64,000 bases of DNA from Orbicella franksi (taxonomy: Eukaryota). Within the stretch, counting starts at the first letter, position 1. Each line of letters begins with the position of its first letter. The notes under the pieces were generated by a model. That model made no database searches, was not told the DNA's origin, and saw only the letters and a program-made list of their open reading frames with translations. The stretch spans positions 18,290,001-18,354,000 of the forward strand of contig OZ116699.1 of the NCBI GenBank assembly GCA_964199315.1, in the 5' to 3' direction. A program made the translations under genes and the position numbers. This document shows, one piece after another, positions 15,171-19,990 of the stretch.

Positions 15171-16868
15171 TATTACTTGCCGTTTTGTTCTTGAGATAAT
15201 AGATAAATGTTGTGTTATGACACATTTGATGTCATTGGTAGTCGTATCGCGCTACAGTATTGATCTTAAGGCACAGCACCTGTATCTGGTGATATTTAAG
15301 TCTCCACCGATGACTTTTCGCCGTTGCACCTTGTGAACTCTTGTTGAACCAGTAAGGAACTTTAGCGCTTGTCAATAGAATTCATTGTTCGGCCGTTTCT
15401 ACGCCAGTAGCACTTTAAAGATTTGCAAAATTTACCCACGGTCATTTATTCTTATGCAAATGTGGAAAAATCTTTTCAAATTCGGCGAGTGATCTACGCG
15501 AAATGATATTCGGCAAATCTCCCTCAATACTTGTTATGAATGCTGAATAAATAACAGTTTTTGTTCGAATTCAACTCGCGCCGTTTATTTTCTAAATGAC
15601 TTTATCATTAGGCCATCCCACTTTTTGTGTTTTGGTGCAACGATTCTTGTTTGTGTTTTCACTCTTCAGAATTAATAGTTGCCTTTTCTAACGCAGGTCA
15701 CCGGATATTTTCCACGTGACTTGATCATGCGTTCTAGAACCAGGTGGTCCTCCTACGCAGCCGACCTTTGTGTTTATGTCTTAATACCATCTCTTGGGAT
15801 GTTAAGCTGAAAAAAAGCGTGAGTGAATTAGCTAGAGAGAGCCCTCTCGGCCATGTGTAGCTTAAGCTGATTTCAGAGTCAACCAGGTCGGTTTTATTCA
15901 TCGGAGATCTCACCACTTCGAATTTTCCGGATCAATCTCGGAATCTGACTGAATTCGAGCCAAAGGTGAAATTGCAAAACTACATGTACATGCCGAATGA
16001 ATGACAATGACCATTTGGCAATCAGCAAATGAGAAAATAACATACGGTATCCTCTCGCCTATCTACCTTGCCACCATGAACAGCAACGAAAAAATGTCAT
16101 CATGGACAATTACTACAATTTGAGTGAGATTTCCTTAGGACATTCGTATCCTAATCTCATTTTGTGCTTTTAAAGCAATTGGGTTTCCGTATTCTTTCTA
16201 ACGGCCAAGCGGCACGATGTGGGTGCAAGTTTCTTAAAACAACTTTGATCCCAATTTTCAACACCCTTGTTCTAAGCTTACTAGTCATTTCGGGCTGACT
16301 CAAGCGTAACAGACTTTTTAATGAGCCAGCATTGGGCGCCACTCCATATCTATACAGAAGGTTCTATAACAATGGTTGCGGTGGTTCGCAGCTAAAACAT
16401 GCAGCCACCTGTGAGTTAAACACTTAATACACGTGACGTTTTTCTCGTCTGCACGCCATTATGTAGTGAAAATTTCTGACTTTTAATTACTTCTCTTTAG
16501 TAAAAGGCTCTGAAAATAACAATATACTCTATTTCACAAAATATAACCACACTTGGATCTCTCTAGCTCTTTGTCCTTCAAATATATTCGTCGCTTACAT
16601 AACTTCTTGTACATTTTTGAATATCAAAAGTTACTTTTTTAACATATTGTTTTACATAAATACACTGTTATTTATATTAGCTCTCCTTAATAAGGTTCTT
16701 TTTCTCAAAGCGTTTCATTTAACTCGAATTGACTAATTCATAGCCCAATACTTCTCTAGTAATCATTTGGCACTCTTACAAAACACGCGCTACTTAATAC
16801 TTGCGTTTTCGTGCGTGCCCGTAAACTCAAAATTACGGAAAACATCTTCAAAGTCCAGGCGGTTAAAG

Positions 16869-19427
16869 TCAGTAAAAGACTTGTTCCCTTTGTGATTCAA
16901 GAAGATTTTTGAACGGCATGTTCTCTCTCATTTGCTCTGTGGCCGTGTCAGGGGGCATGCGGGCGTTTTGCTGCTCGGGGCGATGGTGATTCGAATTTGA
17001 TTTCTCCAGATAGTAGGCGTGATGAATTCGAATATGCGTGCGTAGATTACTCGAGCTGATGAATTTCCAGTTGCAGATGTTACACTTGTACGGTTTTTCC
17101 CCAGTGTGGGTCAGAATGTGCGATTGGAGGTTGCCAGAGGTAGTGAAGGCTTTGGAGCACTGTTTGCACTTGTATGGGCGCTCGCCTGTGTGGATACGGA
17201 CGTGTCTTCGCAGATCGCTCGAGCTTACGAACGCCTTGGGACAGTACTGGCACTTGTGTGGTTTCTCGCCCGTGTGTGTCAGGATGTGTCTCTGTAAATT
17301 GGTCAGCTGAGCGAATCCACGGCAGCAGATATTACAGGTGTACGGCTTTTCGCCGGTGTGAATTCGGTTGTGGATCTTCAGGTGCGCCGCTAGGGCGAAA
17401 GCCTTCGGGCATTTCTGGCACTTGTATGGCTTCTGGCCCGTGTGGATGAGAACATGGCGTTGGAAATTCCACGAGCGGGTGAACACTTTACTGCAGTGCT
17501 GGCACGTGTAAGGTTTTTCGTTTCCCGTGGAATCCGTTTCCTTTTCTTCTTTAATGGCCGCAAAATCCGCCAAGCGTTCGCTATCAGGACGCTCCTCCCT
17601 ATTCCACGCGTTCATTCTTTTTTCACTATCACCATGAAAGCCGTTCTGTCCGTTATATTCCTTGCTTGTGTTGATGACATGCGGTTCGTTGTTTGGCATA
17701 ACTAGGGGTTGGGCATAAGGCGCTGTGAGACGATACAGTTCAGCTTGTGAAGATGCTACAGTTGGTGGGGTATCCTCGGTGTTGTCTGTAAGTGTAAGAA
17801 TGTAACAACTTAGCAACTCTAAGTTTACTTAAGTAATAAGCAGTTACAATTAACATTTCGAGCTCGGGCTTGCTCCTCCCTGGTAGAAAACCGCAATGGC
17901 TTACACCCTAATCGTTTATCATACGCAAAGTGTATCGAGAGAGCTTAACGAGAATACGCCTGTTTGTAGCCGGCAAAGTAGCCAAGATTTTCATGCCGAC
18001 TGGTAGATTTAGCGGTATTAATTCGGCAAACCAATTCCCAATAACTGTACTGTAAACACTGGTTCGTTAACGATTCTCTTTGAAAAGTTTTAAAGGTGGT
18101 AATTAAATTGATTCTTGGTTATTCAGTCTTTACAGTGACTTTATTACACTGCTGAATGCCTGTTTAACTACGAAACTACGCTTAACCAAAACTGTAAATC
18201 CTGAAATTTATAAAAATCTACCGGATTATGAAGAAGGAGTCGGGCTTTTTTGTCTATCTTAGAAGGAACGATGAAATGTAAGCGGCGACAAGTGAAAAAA
18301 GACGAGCAATTTTATTTCGGTTTTACTATGAATGTTTAATGGCTAAAAATACCATTTTATAAAAGTCATCAAACACCACGAAGCCCTTTCTTGATGCATT
18401 TTAACAGTTCTCTTAATCCGAAGGCTCTTTAACAAACCGCAAGCAAGATAGAAAAGCATAATAATTCTATTTCAAATCTTCTGGGTAGAATCAAACGCCA
18501 AAATAACTGGATTTTCATGTTCAATCGAGAACAAAAGCTCACTAGTTCTAAGATGTTATGTATTGAAATGCTGCCTCCAGGACATTAGAATTGCTGTTAA
18601 AAAGCTCTAAATAGATAGAAAAAGAATTTCTAAACCCTTTTGGTGTATAAATGTCCTGATTTTTTCAGGAAGCCTCTGACAGAGAAGGGATGAAAATTGC
18701 TTCGATGTTTGTACTCCAAGAATAAATAATTCAGCACCGGCAAGAAGCTATTCTGTAATCGCCAGAGGACAAACCGTGGACGTGCTTTTTCTCTTCTACA
18801 CTATCACATTTTACTTATATCCTACACGAATTTTTTCAGGACATCCTAATATGTCTAATCTAATTTACGTACCCATTAGGAGTGACATTGGAGGCTTAAG
18901 TAGCTCAGTGGTGATTTTTCTTTGATGCCTTTTAAAAGACCTTCCAGGTATTTTACGGGTAGCAAGGTCGACTCATGTTTAAGATTCTCCACAAAGAGGA
19001 AAACTTAATCCAAGAAATAAAATCTTCAATACAGTCATTCGACAGATATTCGATCCAACAGAATAATATGCTGTGGAAACTACAGTGGAGGAGTTAAACA
19101 GACCGAGGCACTTTCAAATAAACTAGCTAAGTCTCGCTTAACAACTGAGAAGTAGTTTGTCCTTAGTCGCCATGCAGTGAAAAAGGCAATTAAAAAATGA
19201 TTATTTTTGTTCTATTCATGAGAAATAGACTCTCTTTCTTGATTTATTTTAAGAACTTCGTTCTCTTGCTACTAGAAGCACTACGAACTTACTTTAAAAA
19301 AGGCAGAAATTTGTAAAATGAACGGTCACAACTCAAGCGTATGAAAAGGACTTAAATTTAACTTACCAAAGTAAGTGATACTGTTTTTCTTGAATTCCTT
19401 CTTTTTGATTAAAAATGAGCGAGGCAT
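16869..19427 (-). CDS. SNAG-domain C2H2 zinc-finger transcriptional repressor (6 fingers), 2 exons, 325 aa
   Basis: Exon 1 is 19427-19367 (61 nt, MPRSFLIKKKEFKKNSITYF + G|GTAAGT). Exon 2 is 17785-16869 (acceptor CTTACAG|, 917 nt). The phase-1 junction gives ...TYF-D-NTEDTPP and a 978-nt CDS. Six tandem C2H2 fingers are joined by TG(E/Q)(K/R)P linkers. The finger sequences are not those of Snail, Scratch or Gfi1, so no symbol is given. Confidence 0.9.
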
Positions 19428-19885
19428 TCTTGATTTTTGTGGCTGTAGGCTTGATATGTGGATCTCTGTAGATAGATGTCAGTCCGAACTCTGGGATACT
19501 CTTGGTGTATGATTAAGGCTCCGGCGATCGTGCGCTAACTTTGGTTTAAAATGAACTGAAGAATCTTGCGCTGGTTGAGTTATTATAGGCCTCGAGAGTG
19601 GCCTGGACAGGTGTAGCTAGGATATACAGCGGTCGTAAACAATTTCCCACTTGCTAGCCTGGCGCAAACTTTCATACATGGAGACTGAATGCCCCTTGAT
19701 CATATCACGACAAAAGAATAAAACAATCTGTTATTTAAAACAACAACCTCTTTGCAATACTACTGGCCGGGTATTAATTTATTAAAGACCTGCCCCGGCC
19801 CCATCAAGAATTCAATGCTTTGCAGGTTGCGCGAGTAGGAAAATGGCTAAACGACTAATCCTGTTTGACAAAGGGCCGCTGTCGG

Positions 19886-19990
19886 CCAATCTTAACTGGG
19901 GTATCGCATTGCGCATGCATGATAGAATAGTTTGTTTAAAACTTGGCAGGCTTGTTCGCTGCTAGTGGCGCCGGTAACCGACCAATCGCA
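19886..19990. promoter_or_regulatory. Candidate proximal promoter elements upstream of the SNAG-ZF gene
   Basis: CCAAT boxes at 19886 and 19982, NRF1-like GCGCATGC at 19911-19918, and a nearby CAGGTG E-box at 19608-19613. Motif matches only. Confidence 0.3.

Follow-up and report, generated by a model that had tools for sequence, protein, structure and literature searches.

A zinc-finger gene on the minus strand of a 64,000-nucleotide (nt) stretch of the Orbicella franksi genome (assembly GCA_964199315.1, contig OZ116699.1, positions 18,290,001 to 18,354,000; here called the window) is almost certainly the single-copy ortholog of CnZNF1 (formerly ZNF845), a regulator of stinging-cell (cnidocyte) development, and its predicted protein begins with a SNAG motif. 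The best overall explanation, which is considered fairly probable, is that this CnZNF1 ortholog would act through its N-terminal SNAG as a repressor of the LSD1-CoREST-HDAC type. The locus and the role of the gene are already known, and the useful part of the result is the motif.

The gene has two exons, and all of its features given below lie on the minus strand in window coordinates. Translation starts at an ATG at 19427, with A at -3, and the last 61 nt of exon 1 (19427..19367) encode MPRSFLIKKKEFKKNSITYF and then contribute one G. The SNAG motif, MPRSFLIKK, occupies codons 1-9 (19401..19427), at the extreme N-terminus, and agrees with the SNAG consensus M-P-[RK]-[SAG]-F-L-[VI]-K. With its 5' untranslated region (UTR), exon 1 extends over 19367..19811 according to transcript contig alignments and RNA depth; the 5'-most contig end is 19811, and most contigs and reads begin near 19716 or below, giving a full length of ~290-445 nt. 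The 61-nt exon of the original prediction is thus correct for the coding part alone. A phase 1 GTAAGT donor (19361..19366), seen in the sequence and in the RNA joint 19367/17785, opens a GT..AG intron of 1581 nt (17786..19366), which ends in an acceptor reading ...cttacAG/AC. At the junction, G+AC form a split codon for Asp, after which the frame reads NTEDTPP... as far as the stop at 16869-16871. Exon 2 (16151..17785) holds the remaining coding sequence (17785..16872), the stop and a 3' UTR that reaches to at least 16151. Six tandem C2H2 fingers, spanning 164 residues, are encoded at 17019..17510 (Pfam zf-C2H2, six stretches), and Pfam finds C2H2-type families only in the window protein. Their helices (-1 to +6) read RSWNFQR, LAAHLKI, QLTNLQR, SSSDLRR, TSGNLQS and SSSNLRT, and the six helix strings quoted in the original prediction are correct.

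The splice is directly visible in RNA. A protein search returned a 325-residue protein (P0001) that corresponds to the predicted spliced product, with 100% identity over the exon 2 query in the search table; two residues of its printed sequence depart from the window translation. Four RNA-derived contigs (three sequencing runs and one JGI metatranscriptome) encode P0001, and these map to the window in two segments, one of 19811 or 19716..19367 and one of 17785..16151, with an identity of 99.4-99.8%. In an independent 2026 RNA-seq run of bulk coral poly(A) RNA (X24), the stretch 17786-19366 is skipped by 10 raw reads that have 8 distinct starts; the gap is bounded by CT..AC on the plus strand and hence by GT..AG on the gene strand, and read depth inside the intron is zero. 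The joint 19367/17785 is also present in two RNA contigs, one of them at a depth of 1058, and no alternative joints were seen in 16100-19900 in four RNA runs. RNA runs contain 0.46-0.60 of the words sampled from that stretch, of which the two exons make up 0.55. The predicted SNAG exon, donor, splice and phase are therefore borne out by four transcript contigs and 10 raw reads joining 19367 to 17785.

Contigs of low depth (2-8x) from both strands were also found at 17922-19332 within the intron in two metatranscriptome runs, with none in the raw poly(A) reads; these probably reflect unspliced transcripts or carried-over DNA. The assembly and the RNA differ at single bases at 17268, 17528, 17535, 19381 and 19518, which look like allele or sister-species variation. 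At 19381, C>T in the reads changes Ser16, just past the SNAG motif, to Asn, the residue present in P0001.

Going upstream from the ATG, the frame reaches a stop 17 codons away without passing another ATG, so that no upstream in-frame start displaces SNAG, in line with the original prediction. The 5' UTR is colinear with the genome, and thus the start is not displaced by a further upstream exon. Upstream ATGs in the longest 5' UTR are all at or above 19675 and all terminate before the start. Given the in-frame stop, the lack of an upstream RNA joint and the termination of the upstream ATGs, the SNAG motif is placed by sequence at the true N-terminus of the predicted protein, where Pro would be free after removal of Met.

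Four upstream ATGs are found at 19675-19804, in the longest 5' UTR form only, and two of them are in the main frame, stopping at ~19620. A TATA-like box (TATAATA, 19581..19587) may be a candidate main promoter, giving a ~130-nt 5' UTR free of upstream ATGs; such a main start site is suggested by the position of the box, at 19587, together with the fall of read depth upstream of ~19655.

The exon had been described as hidden, and the open reading frame (ORF) list does miss it: there, the exon 2 frame begins at an intronic TTG and reads MLSCYILTL, as originally noted. However, an NCBI model from Pocillopora damicornis, the species of the nearest match that carries a name (XP_027039484.1, 325 residues, ~87% identical), already begins MPRSFLIKKK. 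Exon 1 is thus concealed from a naive ORF scan only, and public gene models include the equivalent exon.

Nematostella ZNF845, renamed CnZNF1 by Babonis et al. 2022, is XP_001641179.2 (PMC9172639). The same accession was recovered in the protein search (match P0027), in which the Hydra member of a match cluster is named 'Transcription factor ZNF845' (I3V7W9/AFK74883). The 164-residue finger array is 98% identical to that of Nematostella CnZNF1, 91% to that of Xenia, 87% to that of Rhopilema and 79% to that of Hydra ZNF845, compared with 52-54% for generic bilaterian poly-zinc-finger proteins and 35-48% for the SNAG-bearing zinc-finger genes of the same genome. Across an alignment of 12 orthologs the helix residues are invariant, bar one F/Y in finger 1 and one Q/H in finger 5. 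When the whole 497-Mb genome was searched with the protein, the gene's own locus scored 718 bits over residues 1-304, and the runner-up scored 187 bits (54% identity) over the fingers only. The identification as CnZNF1 follows from the Hydra cluster name, the match to XP_001641179.2, the finger array identities and the single-copy result of the genome search.

Orthologs with the same fingers and N-terminus are found in Hexacorallia (several corals and Nematostella), Octocorallia (Xenia and Paramuricea), Scyphozoa (Rhopilema) and Hydrozoa (Hydractinia and Hydra). The organism-named protein matches above ~60% identity are all cnidarian (many such matches are unnamed), and the non-cnidarian ones cover fingers only, at no more than 58%. 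A profile search with the 12-ortholog alignment returned giant poly-zinc-finger proteins only, summed finger scores swamping the result, and is uninformative on bilaterian orthologs. In the PDB, the whole protein matched generic arrays (ZNF568, Aart, CTCF and PRDM9), with no family signal. The original prediction of a distinct, possibly cnidarian-specific SNAG zinc-finger family and candidate cell-fate regulator holds in that the family is, according to published work, restricted to cnidarians and is a cell-fate regulator, but the family is not a new one. The gene falls inside CnZNF1/ZNF845, a group that the prediction had not listed, which refutes the idea that it belongs to no ortholog group already described.

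The name ZNF845 was given in 2012 to a Hydra gene that marks the interstitial stem-cell lineage, and its functional study in Nematostella dates from 2022 (PMC9172639). In Nematostella it is required for cnidocyte development, upstream of PaxA, and suppresses RFamide neuron fate via the nuclear receptor NR12. On ZNF845 knockdown, cnidocytes are lost and RFamide neurons are gained (PMC9172639), and PaxA expression is abolished. CnZNF1 has been published as a cnidarian-specific six-finger protein built by domain shuffling, with a statement on reciprocal BLAST (Babonis et al. 2022, PMC9172639), and is treated together with the most ancient finger proteins, said to have 'no other conserved functional domains'. 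The SNAG motif qualifies this view of CnZNF1 as a protein without a conserved domain beyond its fingers.

The motif is widely conserved. M-P-[RKH]-[SAT]-F-L-[IV]-K is present in 15/15 full-length orthologs (12 aligned and 3 further), and is kept in Hexacorallia, Octocorallia, Scyphozoa and Hydrozoa. Among the 12 aligned cnidarian orthologs M1, P2, F5, L6 and K8 never vary and K9 hardly does, whereas positions 3 (R/K/H), 4 (S/A/T) and 7 (I/V) are variable. The 90-250 residues that follow the motif are unalignable, and the next invariant residue in these 12 sequences is the first finger cysteine. The Hydra ZNF845 intron is also in phase 1, and the introns of both Nematostella and Hydra are supported by protein-to-genome mapping. 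Within the linker, the medusozoan orthologs (P0052, P0053, P0049, P0121 and P0088) carry a motif, K-[KR]-D-L-Y-N-E-[FI]-F-x-L-D, at alignment columns ~185-203, that is not found in anthozoans and may serve a lineage-specific interaction.

Within the searchable literature, the conserved SNAG of the CnZNF1 family appears to be unreported. No co-mention of 'ZNF845' with 'SNAG' was found in that literature, and SNAG is not mentioned in the ZNF845 papers examined. The ZNF845 papers checked for 'Lsd1' do not mention it in their text, a 2025 review citing an Lsd1 paper in its references only, and neither SNAG nor ZNF845 appears in the papers on Nematostella Lsd1 and CoREST. Thus, in the literature searched, ZNF845/CnZNF1 and Nematostella Lsd1/CoREST have not been connected. 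A PDB search with the 20-residue N-terminus gave no match; this peptide is too short for phmmer, and the search is uninformative on SNAG.

The SNAG peptide binds the histone H3 site of LSD1, and SNAG factors bring LSD1-CoREST-HDAC to DNA (PMC13316430). In SNAIL, Pro1 and Arg2 of SNAG are critical for LSD1 binding, the 1-9 peptide has a Ki of 0.14 uM, and a published AlphaFold3 analysis placed the SNAG domain in the LSD1 catalytic site in 30/30 models (PMC13316430). In CnZNF1, the initiator Met would be removed and the free Pro-Arg-Ser-Phe-Leu N-terminus would occupy the histone H3 pocket of LSD1, as in Snail, Gfi and Insm1. The six fingers, separated from SNAG by a linker of ~90 residues much as in SNAIL, would then bring the LSD1-CoREST-HDAC complex to specific DNA sites. 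CnZNF1 would be mainly a repressor, acting for instance on the RFamide neuron programme of cnidocyte precursors, and the 'activation' of PaxA and capsule genes that has been reported for it would be indirect or SNAG-independent.

When NvLsd1 is lost, mature cnidocytes disappear almost completely, in a cell-autonomous manner (PMC8786827), and NvCoREST is reported to have a developmental role and to form a conserved complex with NvLsd1 (PMC9400249). Recruitment of LSD1 by CnZNF1 fits with these data, since knockdown de-represses RFamide neurons and NvLsd1 mutants lose mature cnidocytes. On the conserved N-terminal sequence, SNAG-dependent recruitment is judged to be the probable case. The SNAG of CnZNF1 would make it a candidate DNA-binding recruiter behind the requirement for Lsd1/CoREST in cnidocytes, and a conserved SNAG on a master regulator of stinging cells offers a concrete hypothesis for how a new fate is promoted while an old one is suppressed.

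Searches of the coral genome for LSD1, using the SWIRM and amine-oxidase Pfam domains, returned only scattered exons and a SWIRM ORF that is not evidently LSD1. The open frame with a SWIRM domain (64 bits) met in this search has 402 residues, does not resemble LSD1 and is located at C14:22017512-22020742.

Several observations weigh against repression through LSD1, and part of them would be expected if the motif were conserved but worked without LSD1, through another partner, stability or nuclear import, in a gene that is mainly an activator. In the published network CnZNF1 is described as an activator, within an activating cascade from sox through znf845 to paxA. PaxA, POU4 and Ncol3 expression is unchanged in NvLsd1 mutants, in which the defect comes late in differentiation and maternal Lsd1 persists; as these mutants keep PaxA and ZNF845 knockdown abolishes it, Lsd1 is not obviously needed for the early role of CnZNF1. 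The published text on NvLsd1 co-immunoprecipitation and mass spectrometry names CoREST, HDAC1/2, HMG20 and PHF21A and no SNAG factor, and position 3 of the motif, R in the coral, is K or H in some lineages. A function without LSD1 is nevertheless considered unlikely, if far from negligible. The conserved P2, F5, L6, K8 and K9 fall in the 9-residue segment that is sufficient for LSD1 binding (SNAIL 1-9), and every other protein of the genome with such an N-terminus and a found finger array is a SNAG-type zinc-finger gene. RFamide is de-repressed on knockdown, and knockdown data cannot tell direct activation from double repression.

Other points also count against the proposed recruitment. Zinc-finger or SNAG interactors were looked for in the supplement of the CoREST paper, and none were found. 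A gfi1b-like gene encodes a cnidocyte transcription factor downstream of ZNF845, and the Lsd1 phenotype could be explained by this factor as the SNAG partner. The Hydra gene contains, in exon 1, another ATG in frame with the SNAG Met and 7 codons before it (MSERDIT-MPKAFLVK), so that the annotated protein buries the motif, and in another coral (P0007) the longest called ORF is open from upstream into the SNAG Met. Translation from the Hydra upstream ATG or in the P0007 upstream frame would, if used, bury the motif. In Hydra the context of the upstream ATG is weak (-3 is C and +4 is T); at the SNAG ATG, -3 is A.

As a check on chance, the back-translated SNAG pattern was compared with the 497-Mb genome, which gave 29 matches, against 3 for a reversed control. 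About 15 of the 29 read M-P-[KR]-[SA]-F-L-[VI]-K. Family labels for these loci were assigned from signature helices and not by a tool. On this basis there are presumably two Gfi-like arrays in tandem, ~21 kb apart, at C1 11.84-11.86 Mb (C1:11837993 and C1:11858887), two Snail-like arrays (C5 and C11), one Scratch-like array (C13), one Insm-like array (C4), two Ovo-like arrays ~17 kb apart (C7) and one Fezf-like array (C11). Four further SNAG zinc-finger genes, with 4-9 fingers, are unclassified (two on C7, one on C8 and one on C10). Besides the Gfi-like pair, the SNAG loci listed are C4:32779799, C5:5464851, C7:26978611, C7:26995772, C11:6037981, C11:26894839, C13:18358555, C8:11622043, C10:14891233, C7:3732560, C7:29120185 and C13:1830358. 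For the SNAG exon at C13:1830358, no fingers were found within the stretches read.

The Gfi-, Snail-, Scratch-, Insm-, Ovo- and Fezf-like arrays are 35-42% identical to the window array, below the poly-zinc-finger background of 52-54%, and the helices of all other SNAG arrays of the genome are unlike those of the window gene. As each family has its own SNAG locus elsewhere in the genome, with different helices, the comparison of arrays puts the window gene outside Snail, Scratch, Gfi, Insm, Ovo and Fezf. This agrees with the original prediction that it is not Snail, Scratch or Gfi. Membership of Snail/Scratch was rejected, since the signature helices SLGALKM, RPWLLQG and DRSNLRA (4-5 fingers) are not in the window gene and identity is 39%. 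Gfi was rejected on the lack of its RSSTLST/QKSDMKK/QSSNLIT core and on 40% identity to the genome's Gfi-like gene; the Gfi-1 fingers in the PDB score 78 bits against the window protein, below generic zinc-finger proteins. Blimp1/PRDM1, which the fingers had been said to recall, was rejected as well: Pfam finds no PR/SET domain, residues 1-112 are too short for one, there are six fingers and not five, and the nearest structures are generic arrays, so that the suggested resemblance is unsupported.

A SNAG motif on non-bilaterian Fezf has already been published (PMC2942887). The combination of six fingers and SNAG, as in Gfi and non-bilaterian Fezf, and the phase 1 first-exon architecture common to these families would suit a gene that had diverged within one of the established SNAG families (Gfi, Snail/Scratch, Fezf or Fezf-like). 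Nematostella 'Fezf-like' SNAG genes noted in 2010 (PMC2942887), which may or may not include CnZNF1, would also suit this reading. However, such an origin is very improbable, given that the families have their own loci elsewhere in the genome, with different helices, and that identity is at 35-42% against a background of 52-54%.

There is next to no likelihood that the upstream exon is a chance ATG and donor, or an untranslated leader, with the protein starting inside exon 2, as the exon-2-only ORF of the naive scan and the many genomic-contig database entries without the motif might suggest, because the exons are joined in frame in spliced reads and in contigs, the motif is kept across the phylum and no ATG of exon 2 precedes the first internal Met of the frame. 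For this last reason, the motif-less genomic predictions in the databases, of which there are many, are explained as intron read-through.

The SNAG exon may have a shared origin. In 13/13 intron-bearing SNAG genes of the genome, and in 9/9 of those with GTRAG[TA] donors, the SNAG exon is followed by a best predicted donor in phase 1, where the donors were predicted from the first 110 nt after each SNAG ATG and are RNA-verified for the window gene only. First-exon coding lengths of the SNAG genes of the genome are 61-106 nt. The presumed Insm-like gene is intronless. No special affinity of the finger array to any SNAG family was found. The module of a short SNAG exon and a phase 1 intron is compatible both with descent from an older gene of the SNAG zinc-finger kind and with a SNAG exon shuffled onto a new array, and as a shared module it adds a piece to the published domain-shuffling model. 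Taken at its fullest, the preferred reading would be that CnZNF1 is a SNAG-dependent LSD1-CoREST-HDAC repressor and not a finger-only activator made from scratch in the stem cnidarian, that SNAG explains the shut-off of the ancestral RFamide neuron programme and part of the cnidocyte loss seen in Lsd1 and CoREST mutants, and that the first exon is a shared SNAG module in a gene built by duplication or exon shuffling. This full combination is advanced tentatively, as a possibility that falls somewhat short of being probable.

At the other end of the protein, a motif of the form MPFKNL..REQVFY-COOH (16872..16919) was recognized in the ortholog alignment (columns ~500-525) and in further orthologs. 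It ends exactly at the C-terminus. Hexacorals keep it, Nematostella has a weaker form (QQVYY), and hydrozoans show an echo of it, E-[EQR]-V-[YF]-L.

Among known systems, Blimp1/PRDM1 resembles the window gene in having C2H2 fingers with QL.NL-type helices, but the window gene gives no specific match to it. Gfi1/Gfi1b/Senseless proteins share both SNAG and six fingers with the window gene; however, the Gfi-like helices of the genome (TPHGLEV, HTVSLEQ, RSSTLST, QKSDMKK, QSSNLIT and RKVDLRR) include none that match. The SNAG repressors as a whole (Snail, Scratch, Gfi1/1b, Insm1, Ovol and non-bilaterian Fezf) have in common with the window gene an N-terminal M-P-[RK]-S-F-L-[VI]-K-K, a short first coding exon and a flexible linker of ~90 residues followed by a C2H2 array. 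They differ in that the window array is related to theirs only at the generic C2H2 level (35-42%) and presumably has no bilaterian ortholog, and in that LSD1 binding is here predicted. With CnZNF1/ZNF845 the window gene shares the six fingers, the N-terminal motif, the single copy and a presumed restriction to cnidarians, and in Nematostella CnZNF1 the first coding exon is likewise of 61 nt, with a GTAAGT donor and a phase 1 intron. The number of exons differs, with 2 in the coral gene, 3 in Nematostella and 4 in Hydra. As a member of the CnZNF1 family, the window gene is ordinary, and nothing sets it apart.

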